Assembly (NCBI GenBank): GCA_900088475.1
Contig: FLMG01004535.1
Coordinates: 1-64,000, forward strand
Direction of reading: 5' to 3'
Source: Hyphochytrium catenoides
Lineage: Eukaryota; Protista; Hyphochytriomycota
DNA length: 64,000 nt
The first letter of the stretch is position 1. Each line of letters opens with the position of its first letter. Positions 26,976 to 57,041 of this stretch are shown here, piece by piece. Under the pieces are notes generated by a model that was given only the letters and a program-made list of their open reading frames with translations, was not told the DNA's origin and did no database searches. Made by a program: the position numbers and the translations under genes.

Positions 26976-27060
26976 NNNNNNNNNNNNNNNNNNNNNNNNN
27001 NNNNNNNNNNNNNNNNNNNNNNNNNNNNNNNNNNNNNNNNNNNNNNNNNNNNNNNNNNNN
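26976..27060. other. Assembly gap (N run)
   Basis: Run of n flanked by CT repeats. Confidence 1.
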
Positions 27061-37337: not shown

Positions 37338-37418
37338 NNNNNNNNNNNNNNNNNNNNNNNNNNNNNNNNNNNNNNNNNNNNNNNNNNNNNNNNNNNNNNN
37401 NNNNNNNNNNNNNNNNNN
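37338..37418. other. Assembly gap (N run)
   Basis: Run of n flanked by CT-rich sequence. Confidence 1.
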
Positions 37419-48661: not shown

Positions 48662-48747
48662 NNNNNNNNNNNNNGAGAGAGAGAGAGAGAGAGGAAGAGG
48701 AGAGAGAGAGAGGAAGAGGAGAGAGAGAGAGGAAGAGGAGAGAGAGT
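48620..48747. repeat. (GA)n microsatellite containing an assembly gap (N 48662-48674)
   Basis: GA runs plus about 3 copies of GAGAGAGAGAGGAAGAGGA. Confidence 0.9.
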
Positions 48748-51092
48748 AAGCAGTAATAGTTCGAGGGAGCAACATGAAGAAACACTGGTATCTGTAGGAA
48801 AGAGAGCAAGAGAACAGGTAACCAAAAGGAAGAGAGGCAGTTACAGGGAATAGTCTCTCATCATAATAGTAAGACTCAACTTTTCAATAAACAGTAAAAA
48901 CCACCAGCAGCTCAACGATCACTTCGTACCTCGTGGCCCGATAGACCAGCGAGTGAGTCGGCCTAGGGTAGTAGAACTAAGTGAGACCGAGAAGAGAGAA
49001 GCACACAGCGATGAGGTTCTTCTCCCAGGTCGCTCTACCTGTACGTCTCACAGTCGGGTTTTTAGAGGTCAAGCCGGCAGACACCTCATCAAGGAGGTAC
49101 ATCTGCAAGCCGGGCGAGTGAGGGGAGAACAGCAAAGGGACCCTTGGCAGAGATGTAACTCCTATCCCGGACTAGAATGGCTTCGCTTGTCAAGCGTCGA
49201 CCTTGCAAAAACCATTAAACGGAGGCCACGAGGTGGCACGGTGTCGGATCGTTCCCTTCTCCTTCAGGATGTTAGGGATAGGGTGGTCTGTTCTGTCTTC
49301 TCCACTTGCCTTCCCCTCTTCTTGAACGGACTGACGTGTGAGTTATCTCACGGGCACCTCTTAGGTCGCTGTCGTCCTGCTGTCAACCTCTTGGCTGGCG
49401 CTTCCTCAATGGGCTGGAGGGGGTGGAGAGATCGTGGCTGCTTTGATAATAGTAGTAATGGACGGTAATGCGACAGGCGGATGCTGGCCCGTAGATCTAC
49501 TGTGTGACTCGCTTCAGTTAGCGTTCTATTCTTAGAGTCTGAAGGAGTCTGGTCGACATACCGACCGACCAATTAGCAGCCGGAGTTTTATGCTAAGGCG
49601 TTTCTGCACTCGCTTCTCTGGACCTCAACCTTCCATGCCCTACATCTTGCTGTCTATCCTCTCTCTCCTCTGTCTCTTTCTCTTCTCTGTCTCTCCCTTT
49701 CACCTTCCCTTCTCTCCTTGTCCTCCTCGGCCGCGTTCCAAATACTCTTCTGCCTCTGTTCACTATCTACGCTCTTCCATCCTGGTCGTTTCCTTGCTGT
49801 CTCTTGCTGGAATTTTCTGTTACCATTTCCCACCTCACCCGTCAACTTTACTTACCTTAACACAGCTTAGAGGCTGCTCTGTCTCGCTAACGCAAGGACT
49901 AGTTGGTCTATATCTCTCTTTTGCTCTGTCTCTCTTTCCTCCTCAGTCATGATGGAGCTGACTTCTCTTTGTTCCCAGTAGCCACCGCTACACTTCCCCT
50001 CTTGTCATCTCTGTCTTCTTTTGCCTTTCTCTATTCATCTGTTCTGCGTCTAACCCTGAGAGTCATGGAAAGCGGGTCCTTGCTATAAATAGCCTCGTCC
50101 TTGAGGTAGAATGGCGAGGCAAGGAACAGAGAATAGGCTTCCTTTGGCTGCTACCAGTCGGACCCTCCTTTCTTGATCTTCTGTATCAGTCTTCCTCTGT
50201 TTCCATCACAATTGAAAGGTATATTCTGCATGCTTCATGACGACGGCTCCAAAGCTCCAGCTGCTTGTGGCTGGCGAGCCACATCCTGCCTCCTCCCATG
50301 GAACGTGCTATGCGTTCTTTGTTTCTGTTTGAATGTGCTCCCCTTAGCTTGCCCTTTCCTCTTCCCATCCTCTTTTCTTCTCCTCAGTTCCGTCCCTGCT
50401 CTCCTTCCTCTTTTGACTACCCATCCACATCGGCTGCTGCTCGTCTTTCATTCTCTCCTTCTTCTCCTTGGGTGCATTTTGGCTCTTGCTGCCCCACGTG
50501 GTCGTTGCGCTTGTTCCTCTTCTAGTACTAGACTTTCGCTGGCTCCTCCTCTTCCGTAAGCCGCTGGCACACTCTTTCTCCCTCTCGGTTCTCTAGTTCT
50601 ACTATCTGGACTCTTCTCTCTCTCTCTCTCCGGTATGCTTCTGTTCATGAGGTGTTACCGAGCCTTCCTCCTCAGTAGCCAAGCATACCCTCCGTTCCTC
50701 CATCAACGTTGTGGATGATCTACAGTTTCCCCTGTCTTTCATTACTCGCAGCACCCTTACGCGTCTCAGCTCCATTGGTGGACTTCTGACTGTTGTCTGT
50801 CATCCTTCTCTGTGCTGCCGACCTCGTATGGCCGCAGAGGGAGGAAGTTTGGGAGAGGAGAGACGAAAGGGATCCGATGATTAGGATGAACCGATGTGTT
50901 CAAGCAGAAGTGGTAAAAGACCACGGCTCTCTCCCGCTGTGATCGACTCTTCTTCCTTTTTAAGGTGAGCTATCAGAGAGAAGAAAGAGCATCAAGCCAG
51001 AGGCAGAGAAGGTTGAAAGACGAGAACAAGCTTAGTCCGCAGTCTAACTCTTTCCTCTCGGATATTGACCGGTAAAGTAAGTGATACTTCCT

Positions 51093-54000
51093 ATGGCTGC
51101 CGCGGAGGAGAGAAACGCAAGCGGAACAGGGGAAAGCATGTCTCTTTCGCCCTCTCCTTCTCCTGCCTTCACTTTCCTCCTCATCCACGAGGATGCGGCA
51201 GTACGGCACGAGCTGGAAGATCGTCTATCGTCTCTTCAGGGCGGAACAGGTAACACCATTGACGAGATTGCCCGTTGCGTGGTTGCAACCTTTCTTTCTC
51301 AGTTACATTATCTCCCTGCCCTGCTTTCAGTTCATTTGTTCCACTCCGGGCGAGAGGCTGTGGTCTATCTACTGGGCTCTGGCACCAAGGAAAGAGAGAG
51401 CCAAGCGGAGGAGGAGGTGCTGAGAACTGTCCTCTTCATCTCTCCAAGCATCAGTAAACTGGACGCCCTCACCACGCTTAGGGCCTTGCAGGACTCGCTC
51501 AAGCCTCTTGTTGACTATGTGGCTGGTAAGGCTCCCCTCAACCTTATCTCTCCTCTATCTCTCTCCCATTCTCTCTCCTACTCCTCTCTTACACCCTTTC
51601 CGCTTGTTTCTCTCTTTTCCTGTCTCTCTCGCCCTCTCTGTCTGACTCGGTCTCTCAATCTCGACGCTGCCTTTTGTCTCTGTTCTCCTCATCCGTTCTC
51701 TCTATTACCTACTGTTTCTCTTCTTCTTCCTTGATGGCTCTATGTAGCTCTGGTCCTGGTGTCTCTCTCAACTTCCCTACCCCTTTGTGGGCCTCTTGGT
51801 CTTCTCGATACCTCGTCTCTCTCTACCCATTTCCTCCTTCCGTTCTTGGTGCTCTGAGTCCTTATACTCTTACCCTCCCATNNNNNNNNNNNNNNNNNNN
51901 NNNNNNNNNNNNNNNNNNNNNNNNNNNNNNNNNNNNNNNNNNNNNNNNNNNNNNNNNCTCTCTCCTCACTCTCTCACACGCCCTCTCTCTCTCTCCCTCT
52001 GTCTTCTCTTCCCCATCATCTATCTCCATCGCTGTCTTTCTATCTCTTCGGTTGTTAGTGCTCGCTGATCAGCCTGTGCCACGGATCTTCATGCAATGTC
52101 TGAGCGAGAGACTGCTTATCGTTCCTGCCAGACCCTCAGTAGAAGACCTTCGCCGGCTTCTCTCTTCGTTTTCGTCTCGACCTCTACCCTCTTCATCTCC
52201 AAACTCTCCTCGCCAGAGTCGTGAGAAAGAAAGCAAGAAAGAGAAGAGTCTTTCGGGTGACGAGCCAGTAACAGACAAGGGCGGTGGGGATGGAATAGCT
52301 GAGTCCACAGCAGAGGAGAAGCCAAGAGGGGAGAGAAGGGAGAAGGAGAGAGAAAAAGCTTTTACCTCTTCTCCTTCCCTTTCTCCCGTCGTACGTTTGG
52401 ATCAGATGGAGCTCTTCGCTTCGATGATGAGCAAGACTGTTACCTTCTCTTGGAGGTCTGACCTTGATCGCCTAGGGATCGGAGGAGACTTGGCCGGCCT
52501 GCTAGGGTATCAATCAGTAGGAGAGAGAAGGCAAGGACAAAGAGGAGAGAGAGACAGTCATACCTCAGGACTGGTTCCTCTTTCTCCTGCCCAAAATACG
52601 GATGGCACTATTATGAGGACAGAAAGCAGAGGAGATCGGAGTCTCACATTGGAGGCATGGTTATCCCTAGTAGGGCCGGGAGACAGAGAGAGCGTGCGAA
52701 GAACTTTTCACTCCTTTGCCTCGCTCTGTTCCGCTGAGAAAGATCGCGATGAGGAAATGGGAAGGACAAACGGAGTAACACTGCAGAGAAAGCGAAAGGA
52801 GCTTCTTCTGTACTATCAGATGCAGTGCAGAGACGGCTCTTGGATAGATGTGCGGCACACCTGCCAAGCCGGTTACTTCCAAGAGGGAGAGGAGGAAGGA
52901 GAGACAAAAGAGAGCGATAAGCATCGGGCTCCTTTCCTTTTTGGACTGGTCACGCACTATTCTGCAGGTTTCACGGTCGTGAGCCCCTTCTCTCCTCCTC
53001 TTCCAGGAGGCGAGATGCCTGGGTTGGAAGTAGCGGAGGAGAAAGGCTCAGTCAACTCTCTCAGCTCCCGGCATCTTCCATCTCTTCCTCCTCCTACTGC
53101 GGTGACTGGAAGAGAAACAGAGACACCCGAGACAAGAGGAGGAGAGGGATATGGCACTCTCTCCCTGAAGCTGCATGAGATGATTGTCCCTCGCCTAGAG
53201 TCTACCCTCCTCCTGCTCTCTTCCCCTGATGGGGCGATCCTAGAGATCGTAGCCAACAATGTAAGGGCGGTCGCGTTGTACTTCTCTTTGGGAAAGCTTT
53301 TGCACAGAAGTTCTCTGCTTTTCGCTGTCCTTTGTCTTCCCTAGCCCAGCCGCTTTGTTTCGCGAGTGCTTCTTATACCGCTTTCTCGCCTCATCTCTCA
53401 CTATTTTCTCTTCTGTTTTCTCTCTCTCTCCTCCGAATCCGTGTCCTATTTTCTCCCTTTTCTTTCTTTGTCACTCTCCTTCTTTCTTATCTGTTTCTCT
53501 CTTCCTCTCACATATACACATACTCTGTCTCTCTTACGCACACTCTCACTTTTCTCTCTCTCTGTCTGTCTCGCTCTCTCTATGTTTCCCGACAGATGAG
53601 TCCATTGCCTCGCTTTTCCCTCCGCACTCCATTGCAGTCCCACGCCTTCTGGCAGGGATTCCGAAGCACCTGCGAGGAAGCTGTCAGAGAAGCCAGCAGA
53701 GGTATCTCCGCTAAGTTCACCGTCCCCATCGACCCTGCAGCCAAAGCAGCCGCAGACAGCGGAGTGAAAGAAGAAGCGCAACAGCCTCCTGGCGTCTCCT
53801 CATCTTCTACTTTCTCTCAGATGGAGTCTCCGTCGCCCCATGGTGTTGCCCAAGAGAACCCCGTGTCCTATATAACCTGCGTGATAAAGCCACTGCTGCA
53901 TGATCAGTGGGACACTGTCCGCGTCCTTCTCGCAGAGATGAAGGACGTGACAGATGTTGCCCTTTCAGGCCCGTCATTCTCTCTTCAGTCCACCACTTAC

Positions 54001-57000
54001 GATGCCCGAGGGCATATGAGAGGTGGAGGCGACAGTGAGAGAGAAGAAGCAAGAGAGAGAGATGAGCTGATGAACAGTGAGAGTGGACAGAGCCTCTTGA
54101 CAAGCAGCTTTTCTTCGTCTTACTCCTCGCCCTCTTCCTTCTCTTCTCCTTCCATCTTGGGCTCTCACGTACTCCCTCGGGCAAGCTCGAGAGAGAGAGA
54201 GCGGAGCACTCTTCCTCTTCTCCCTCCGTCCAGCAGAAGCCCAGTGCGCCTCCTGGGAAAGAGAAAGATTGCCAGTAAAGAGCCAGAGGGAGAGGGTCGA
54301 AAGAAAGTCACAGAGGACAAGGTAAGGCGCCATCTCTTCCTCTTCATCCCTCTCTTCTTGTCCAATCCTGCTCAGGGCCAATGGTTTCCTTATTCACAGA
54401 TTCTCTCCGGGCTTCTTCGGTACTTCTTTCTATCTTTTTCTTCTTCCTGTCCTTGACTGACCAACCCTTTGTGCTGATCATAGAATGGCTCGCTCTGTCT
54501 GCCTCTCTATTACACTCTTTCTCTACAGCATCCACCCAGTGCCGCAAGCAACGAAGCTCCTTCAAGTCTTCCGTCCGAGCGGCATCAGTCTCTGCCTGGC
54601 ATTATCTGTCTAGAGCAGCTTCTCTCCTCAGTTCCGCCAGATGTCTCTCTTCATTTCCTGTCTTTCCTCCCTGCAGCCTCCCTTTGTGCCCTATCTCAGA
54701 CATGCAGCCGATGGAGAGTCATGCCCGACAGTCTATGGGCTTCTCTTCTGATCAAAAGATGGCGACCACCCGCTTCTTCTCTCTCTCTATGGTCAGCTGA
54801 TATTCCCACGTCGCCACCAAGAGAAAGAAGTGAAGAGAGAAGTAACTCTTCATCTTCATCTTCGGTGTGGAGTGGCGCAAGAGATGAGCCTGATGGAGAA
54901 GGAAGAAGAGACCGAGGACGAGGACGGCCTCCTGTCCATACTATGGTGGGAGGAGAACGAGTGAATGGAGGGGCAAAGAGGCTTCTCCCCGTAGTCAGAG
55001 AGAGAAGAGACAAGCGCTGGAAGCTCCTCTCTGGACTGCACGATAGCCTCCTTCCCCGTGCAAAACTGCGGTATAAAATGTTAGCATCGTCGGAGGCAAA
55101 TTGGCGCAAGGGCAAAGTATCAATCAAGCATTTAGTAGAGGGCAGCCACACGCGGGCTGTCCTTAATGTGCATCTTATAGAGCGGGGAGAAGGAGAGGGA
55201 GAGCTACTTTTAGGAGAGAGAAGGGGTAGGGAAAGGAGAGGCTGGACGCAGAGAGTACTTAGCGCAGGACTGGATGGCTGTGTAAAGCTATGGGACATGT
55301 CATCGGGCTCTCTCCTCCGTACCTTATGGCCCAACGGTCCAGTGATGGACGTGGAAGACGGATCTCAGGGCCTTCTATCTTCTCTCATCATTCCTGGGCT
55401 CCAGGGAGAACATAGGCTGCTGGGCCAGGGTGTATACCTCTTGACAGGTGAGATGTAGGGCTCATTGTTGAGAGTTCTCTCTCTCTCTCTCTGTGTGTAT
55501 GGCTGCCTCTGTCTTCCTTTGCGTCGTTTCTGACTCCTTTCTCCTTTCGCCTATAGTTTGATACATTTGCCTACCTTTCGTCCATGGATCTTGGCTTGCC
55601 CATCTTTCCCCGTTGTCTCTGCCTTACGTTCGTCGCTGTTTTCCCCGCGTAAGGCAACCGTCAAGGCATCCTAAGTGTCATGAACTTATGGACGGGCTCC
55701 TCTGTGGATGGCCGCCTGCCAGCATGGGCAGGAGACCGACGGCGCTCCAACTTGTGGCTGGGTCTTGAGCCTACTCTCTCAGGAGACAGGGTGCTTGCTT
55801 ACTCTGCGGATGGGCCAGCAGGACCGGGAGACGGCCAGCTCGTGTTGGAGTTCCAGCTGAGCTACGGCGAAGAGGAGGAACCTTTCCAACAAAGAGCAGC
55901 TGGAGGAAGAAGAGGCAGAGTGGGCAATGGAAGAGTTCTCTCGTCATTTTCTCCTCGCCATCCCGAGAGAGAGGATCAGGAGAGAGAAGTCACGCCCTCC
56001 CGCTTGATCTCTACCCCTCCACCGTCTTTCTCTCGTGGGACAGGGACTGCAACGGCCTCTTCTTCCTCCTCCAGCGCATCTTCTGCTGCGTCTTTCGCTT
56101 CCTCTTCCTCTTCAATCTCTTCCACCTCAACCAATAATGGGTTGGGAATCCGTCTCGCTCGCGTCTACGAAGTCGCCGATGAAGCTTCATCTGTCTCTTC
56201 CGCTATTTATAACCCTCAGGGTTCTCTCATGGCTGCTGTTACTAGTGACGGTGCAGTGATGCTTTGGGACTGTGACTTGGGAGGAAGACCAGGCACCTCT
56301 CCTACCTCTGTCTTCTTTTCGGGCTCCTCTCCTCTCCCTTCTCAGGGGCCACTAAGGACTCTTAGACCCCCTACGCCTCTTGTCCGACATCCTCTCCTTC
56401 TCACAGAAGATGAAGACGCCGCTGCAATTCCTGGAGGCAGGAGGAGGCATGGCCATTGGGCTGTTCACTTCCAGCGTTCCGAGCCTTCTTGTCTTCTGTT
56501 CTCTGGTGGCGAAGATCGAATCGTTCGCATGTGGGATCTGCGCTCTTCCTCGGGTGAGGCTATGAGGCTTAGTCATGGCCATGCAGATGGCATCACCAGC
56601 ATAAGCAGCTACGGCTGTGCACAGGTAATGAGCGGCCTCTATCTCTTTATCACTCTCGCCGCTTATCCAGTTCATCTAGTGCGCAGGATCTTAGTCTTGG
56701 TTCCTCTCTCCGCTCTCTTCCTTCTGTGGCTCTATCTTCCTGGCTGTATCTTCATCAATATTCCAATATCTGATGCTCCTTGTAAGTTGGCAAACTTTGC
56801 CTTCCTACCCCTCCTCTTGGTATAACGCGTTATCTTCCTTTGTCACTTACACTCTTCTTTCTCTCAGTTGATGACAGGAGATGCCAGTGGTGCAATTGTC
56901 CATTGGGATCTTCGCGTCGGAGGCACCAAACTGCATAGGAACAGAGACCATGGAGGAGGAGCAATTAGAGCTCTGGACGCCAATGGCACCTCAGTGGTTA

Positions 57001-57041
57001 GTGGAACTGACAGAGGAGGAGTGAGAGTGTGGAGCTATTAG
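51093..57041 (+). CDS. Pseudo-receiver / PAS / PAS / F-box / WD40 multidomain protein (about 1447 aa)
   Basis: Exons 51093-51249, 51331-51525, 52059-53260, 53596-54321, 54529-55447, 55654-56624 and 56868-57041 are all GT-AG and phase-compatible (4344 nt). F-box: LLSSVPPDVSLHFLSFLPAASLCALSQTCSRWRVMPDSLW. WD repeats: VLSAGLDGCVKLWD, AAVTSDGAVMLWD, LFSGGEDRIVRMWDLR, LMTGDASGAIVHWDLR, VVSGTDRGGVRVW. PAS motifs: WLSLVGPGDRESV, YQMQCRDGSWIDV, IKPLLHDQWDTVRVLLAEMKDVT. Confidence 0.85.
51882..51957. other. Assembly gap (N run) inside intron 2 of the PAS/F-box gene
   Basis: Run of n within a CT-rich intron. Confidence 1.

Follow-up and report, generated by a model that had tools for sequence, protein, structure and literature searches.

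The locus examined here raises the question whether the N-terminus of a large multi-exon gene of the stramenopile protist Hyphochytrium catenoides is a two-component receiver domain that has lost its phospho-acceptor aspartate. The gene lies in the first 64,000 nucleotides of contig FLMG01004535.1; this whole stretch is called the window below, and its sequence is eukaryotic. The preliminary description had placed such a domain at positions 51168-52171, visible only after splicing. A receiver likeness of the first ~165 residues is faintly discernible and is confined to their first half, and so far the gene is an orphan and the assignment of the domain weakly supported.

The gene occupies approximately positions 51093-57040 of the plus strand and has CT-rich introns. 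Its start codon is the ATG at 51093, with an in-frame TAA upstream at 51078-80. The features of its 5' part are as follows.

51093-51249, plus strand: exon 1, encoding a 25-residue Ser/Pro-rich leader followed by putative strand 1 and helix 1.
51250-51330, plus strand: 81-nt segment, GTAACA...TTTCAG, a short in-frame intron or else 27 coded residues inserted between helix 1 and strand 2.
51331-51525, plus strand: exon 2, encoding putative strand 2 and helix 2 and, beyond an acidic loop of 14 residues, putative strand 3, helix 3 and the first part of strand 4.
51526-52058, plus strand: intron 2, GTAAGG...TTAG, which includes the assembly gap 51882-51957.
52059-53260, plus strand: exon 3, whose first part (52059-52171) encodes the putative remainder of strand 4, helix 4, strand 5 and helix 5.
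53261-53595, plus strand: intron 3, beginning with GTAAGG and ending with ACAG.
53596-54321, plus strand: exon 4, encoding a PAS-like region with low-complexity inserts.

The region 5' of the start codon (50400-51060) consists of a CT-rich and then a purine-rich stretch; it is a possible 5' leader or leader intron, and no open frame links it to exon 1. The other assembly gaps within the window are at 26976-27060, 37338-37418 and 48662-48674. The mean intron length given in the genome paper of H. catenoides is 208 bp (PMC5795050).

The codon statistics used here contrast seven long, unrelated open frames from this genome, on which they were trained, with the gene's own introns. By this measure exon 1 scores +0.57 and exon 2 +0.62 bits per codon in frame, values similar to those of exons 3-5, and the introns of the gene score -0.5 to -1.35 bits per codon. 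The first two exons are thus coding-like, and their phase agrees with that of exon 3: the codon G|TG split by intron 2 yields Val in the string Y-V-A-V-L-A-D. The peptides quoted in the preliminary description were reproduced exactly, and its exon boundaries and splice signals were confirmed from the sequence.

Intron 2 contains letters that were not read. The gap lies 356 nt 3' of the GTAAGG donor and 101 nt 5' of the acceptor. Pyrimidines make up 79-83% of the sequence on either side, which scores as non-coding in every frame (-1.0 to -1.35 bits per codon). The read part of the intron contains only four AG dinucleotides (51529, 51746, 51857, 52057), and among the read letters only AG 52057-58 brings exon 2 into phase with the open frame of exon 3. 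It is also the first AG after ~100 AG-free, pyrimidine-rich bases. The GTAAGG donor hexamer also opens introns 3 and 4. If the frame of exons 1 and 2 is read on unspliced, it runs into a low-complexity tail and ends at a stop (51732) that precedes the gap. The predicted splice of 51525 to 52059, as proposed in the preliminary description, is thus well supported by the letters read.

One possibility is that the model is nevertheless wrong at the 5' end, exons 1 and 2 being a separate short gene or an untranslated leader, or an exon hidden in the gap or another splice altering the domain. The gap length is only an estimate, the frame of exon 3 is open upstream across the gap, and the donor of the 81-nt segment is atypical. 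On the other hand, exons 1 and 2 carry the same coding signal as the downstream exons, the GTAAGG donor recurs in two other introns of the gene, the unspliced frame ends as described above, and the sole in-frame acceptor among the read letters comes first after a long AG-free tract. We consider this explanation unlikely.

The 81-nt segment is ambiguous. It begins with GT and ends with AG, the latter preceded by a run of pyrimidines, and introns of 66-130 nt do occur in the genome of H. catenoides. However, it is in frame and contains no stop codon, and its donor GTAACA has no G at positions +5 and +6, whereas all 11 other introns examined (five of the same gene and six that split bona fide receivers) have one. 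Its coding score of +0.24 bits per codon, best in the frame of the gene, and its pyrimidine content of 0.64 both lie between the exon and the intron values. In favour of an intron, dropping the segment restores the canonical receiver spacing exactly, with zero offset to the profile. The segment may thus be an intron or a coded 27-residue loop insertion, and both isoforms may exist. A coded insertion would not be out of character, because insertions of 30-70 residues that keep the frame are found in other loops of true receivers from this genome. The statement that the domain is visible only after splicing was too strong for this mildly coding-like segment.

Standard homology searches did not detect a receiver in the N-terminus. 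No exon piece matched a receiver family in Pfam or NCBIfam (in Pfam nothing was found at E <= 10), and none gave a significant match to the Response_reg profile (PF00072). The single NCBIfam match, of 12.7 bits, is irrelevant. In a six-frame search of the assembly (4,759 contigs, 61 Mb) with PF00072, the locus 51093-52171 is absent at E <= 10. Comparison by hhalign with eight, and then with 21, receivers of the same genome gave a probability <1%, and HMMER gave ~0 bits against the profile of these receivers. For the exon 3 piece the hhalign P against the receiver profile is 0.33. The profile comparison with Response_reg that had been suggested as a check of the domain therefore came out negative, both in hhalign and in Pfam.

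Searches for relatives were equally unproductive. A search with the 148-residue N-terminus against 1.84 billion representative sequences (phmmer of the HMMER package) returned two matches, both to repeat proteins with many partial stretches, which were judged spurious. The only match in a PDB sequence search, a designed protein with E = 0.02, was disregarded. The genome yielded no paralogue of the N-terminus, of the PAS exon or of the F-box exon, and a metagenome scan yielded no relatives of the N-terminus. The same scan with the F-box exon retrieved one generic WD40 contig, which is not an orthologue. Word-index searches with the PAS exon gave no match within a length window that would miss long relatives. 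The proposed comparison of orthologues at the Asp and Lys positions accordingly had no relatives to align.

A targeted test was based on collinearity. An HMM was built from 21 receivers of the same genome, the exon peptides were scored separately, and the local alignments were chained in the order of the profile. With three pieces the chained score is 32.3, against 24.6 +/- 2.3 for shuffled peptides; three of 1000 shuffles and one of 141 natural decoy triplets, taken from other proteins of the genome, scored as high. With four pieces the score is 39.1 against 29.9 +/- 2.3, reached by one shuffle in 1000 and by 0 of 276 decoys; here exon 2 was divided post hoc at the acidic loop. The resulting P of ~0.001-0.007 is not strong, because the region had been chosen by eye from 64 kb.

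The strongest local matches are those of L-L-I-H-E-D... to profile positions 1-13 and of V-H-L-F-H-S-G-R-E-A... to positions 25-38. The same two spots are picked independently by hhalign, which sets G-R-E-A against the conserved G-x-E-A. Without the 81 nt, the two matches are 11 residues apart in the protein and 11 positions apart in the profile, so that strand 1/helix 1 and strand 2/helix 2 stand in canonical register. The stretch assigned to helix 3 matches weakly to profile positions 54-71 or 55-68, in two registers three residues apart. The half encoded by exon 3 scores -8.4 bits in the proposed gapless register; the spacing there is canonical, with Arg-Pro falling on Lys-Pro and Q-C-L on Q-C-L, and this half has no independent sequence support. 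Thus standard tools detect no likeness beyond chance, and the targeted collinear test weakly suggests one for the first half only. The claim that the spliced peptide tracks the CheY consensus holds up as far as the collinear strand 1/helix 1 and strand 2/helix 2; it does not extend to the exon 3 half with its negative score, and the profiles are blank throughout.

The nearest named clusters in the ESM-Atlas are Response_reg, hybrid kinase/response regulator and OKR_DC_1_N, the last belonging to the CheY clan, with scores of 0.86-0.90. The ten best hits that carry a family all belong to the family or clan of the best one. The hits share ~120 of 256 features with the query, which is typical of chance hits or of distant relatives, and the tool rates them as a lead. 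According to its guidance, a third of shuffled proteins also give ten of ten hits in one clan, and 4-10% of shuffles reach 0.9.

These data bear on an alternative without any receiver descent, in which the N-terminus is a lineage-specific region, either a different kind of alpha/beta domain or a leader that is in part disordered. The alternation of hydrophobic strands and amphipathic helices, and the E-D, G-x-E-A and R-P look-alikes, would then be generic or chance features. All standard homology tools are blank, the second half of the region scores negative, no relatives were found, and the Atlas pattern is also seen in many shuffled proteins. However, only 0.1-0.3% of shuffles and no more than one natural decoy match the collinear score, two independently found matches would rarely fall into zero-offset register by chance, and the language-model neighbours name one superfamily only. 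We regard this alternative as possible, at clearly less than even probability. That the N-terminal ~140-165 residues derive from an Asp-less two-component receiver seems to us, from the same sequence comparisons, to fall just short of an even chance.

Fold prediction does not decide between the two. An AlphaFold model of exons 1 and 2 as read, made without an alignment, has a pLDDT of 59.8. This low confidence says nothing either way, because a true receiver of the same genome, cut at the same point, reached only 60.2. The order of elements in the model is strand, helix, helix, strand, strand, strand, helix, with a strand where helix 2 is expected. Foldseek found no match for this low-confidence model. 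Complex prediction with exons 1-2 and the exon 3 part as two separate chains scored 0.01, which speaks neither for nor against their packing into one domain.

If the N-terminus is receiver-derived, its putative active site is incomplete. An acidic pair, E33-D34 (51189-51194), follows putative strand 1 in F-T-F-L-L-I-H-E-D and aligns with profile positions 5-6. The end of strand 3 reads R-T-V-L-F-I-S-P-S-I-S and contains no Asp or Glu in either plausible register. The position of the phospho-Asp is taken by Ser (51441-51443) in the structurally natural register, or by Leu in the other. In the gapless register, Ala (52064-66) stands at the end of strand 4 in the position of the switch Thr/Ser, and Arg-Pro (52130-52135) after strand 5 in the position of Lys-Pro; these two placements rest on the exon 3 half, which lacks score support. 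The missing acceptor would be a robust conclusion if the fold holds. Of the substitutions that had been proposed, Asp to Ser stands as far as the loss of an acidic residue at the end of strand 3 is concerned, but the replacing residue is Ser or Leu depending on a register that is ambiguous by three residues. Lys to Arg likewise agrees with the gapless register, but falls in the half that scores -8.4 bits.

The Ser at the acceptor position would also allow a receiver fold that is regulated by a Ser/Thr kinase phosphorylating this residue, rather than by His-Asp transfer. The structurally natural register and the retained acidic pair would fit such a mechanism. Against it, the idea is purely inferential and the three-residue ambiguity of the register applies to the same Ser, and we hold it to be highly improbable. 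A non-phosphorylatable receiver-like module is the single best reading, on weak evidence. The proposed regulatory domain that cannot be phosphorylated is consistent with the absence of Asp and Glu, the collinear match and the language-model neighbours; the blank profiles and the negative score of the exon 3 half speak against it.

Receivers are frequent elsewhere in the H. catenoides genome. The six-frame search with PF00072 gave 53 Response_reg matches outside this locus, many of them interrupted by introns or lengthened by in-frame insertions in loops, so that receiver domains are abundant raw material in this organism. Six bona fide receivers (L031-L036, contigs C2181, C2155, C1570, C1673, C2975, C2531) contain stop-free, in-frame, acidic or Ser-rich inserts of 30-70 residues. 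Most of these inserts lie between helix 3 and strand 4; that of L032 lies between helix 2 and strand 3. In six other receiver genes (L037-L042, contigs C1044, C1391, C942, C1115, C778) an intron is located just after the phospho-Asp. Five of these introns are near profile positions 50-54 and that of L040 (C1115) is a few residues further on; their lengths range from ~66 to 370 nt. This suggests an intron position shared within a paralogue family.

The domains downstream of the N-terminus are recognised with different degrees of certainty.

52382-54321, plus strand: PAS-like region or regions in exons 3 and 4 (PAS_3, E = 0.007, 17 bits, below the cut-off).
54622-54753, plus strand: F-box, residues 32-75 of the product of 54529-55449.
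55250-57040, plus strand: WD40 repeats in the last three exons (WD40/beta-propeller families, E from ~4e-6 to 1e-5).

The F-box is above the cut-offs of both families concerned (F-box-like PF12937, 37.2 bits against 24.3; F-box PF00646, 27.3 bits against 20.5). The WD40 family itself scores 25.9 bits, just under its 27-bit cut-off, and several propeller families reach E ~4e-6. The F-box motif (L-P-x-I-I-C-L-E-Q-L-L ... C-S-R-W-R; 54529-54800) has its own exon, which follows an intron of ~200 nt, and ~150 low-complexity residues separate it from the first WD40 repeat. The order of an F-box that passes its family thresholds and a WD40 propeller downstream makes the gene a predicted SCF-type substrate adaptor.

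The following model of the protein can be suggested, in which we infer the fold, the receiver descent, the splicing and every functional step. The protein would act as an SCF-type adaptor through its F-box and WD40 parts, preceded by PAS-like sensor regions. Its first ~140-165 residues would be a very diverged domain with five-fold strand-helix (flavodoxin-like) order, derived from a receiver and retaining Glu-Asp after strand 1 and a basic residue with Pro (Arg-Pro) after strand 5. With the acceptor Asp replaced by Ser and the switch Thr/Ser by Ala, this domain would take no part in His-Asp phosphotransfer. Its role may rather be that of a fixed module for protein binding or dimerisation, as judged from pseudo-receivers elsewhere (PMC6378743, PMC12827874). 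Like other pseudo-receivers, such a module would set or gate the action of the PAS regions and of the F-box/WD40 part. No published description was found of a protein in which a pseudo-receiver is fused to an SCF adaptor. Should the fold be confirmed, a receiver-rich protist would be seen to reuse dead two-component parts in ubiquitin signalling.

Three known systems can be compared with this architecture. With the Response_reg (PF00072) receivers, including those of the organism's own hybrid kinases, the N-terminus shares the putative five-fold strand-helix order, the acidic pair, G-x-E-A at the start of helix 2, the canonical spacing from strand 1 to helix 2, a basic residue and Pro after strand 5, and the N-terminal placement before sensor and output domains. 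It differs from them by Ser for Asp, Ala for Thr/Ser and Arg for Lys, by the 14-residue acidic loop before strand 3 and possibly by a 27-residue insert after helix 1, and it falls below every profile threshold.

The pseudo-receivers of clock proteins (plant PRR/TOC1, cyanobacterial CikA and KaiA) are similar in that a putative receiver-like fold without phosphotransfer would serve as a protein-binding module. CikA has been proposed to work via its PsR domain (PMC6378743), and OsFKF1, an F-box protein, is bound at its LOV domain by the N-terminal, PR-containing part of OsPRR37 (PMC12827874). In the present protein the partner domains within the chain are PAS, F-box and WD40, and not CCT or a histidine kinase. 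The likeness is an analogy only, and nothing ties the gene to a clock.

Finally, ZEITLUPE, FKF1 and LKP2 (LOV, F-box, Kelch) are SCF adaptors that also place a PAS-type sensor ahead of an F-box and a beta-propeller (PMC6378743). The H. catenoides protein has WD40 repeats instead of Kelch, PAS-like regions with weak matches, and an additional putative alpha/beta domain at the N-terminus; no homology to these proteins was detected in the word-index searches with the PAS exon. By analogy, a single polypeptide might unite a dead receiver, PAS sensors and an F-box/WD40 adaptor, the pseudo-receiver acting as a built-in pseudo-substrate or as a gate on the PAS regions. It would then be a cis-fused counterpart of the plant pair of LOV/F-box protein and PRR substrate pseudo-receiver. 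This reading is quite unlikely; if true, it would couple a two-component relic directly to ubiquitin-dependent degradation, in a lineage without detectable relatives of the protein.
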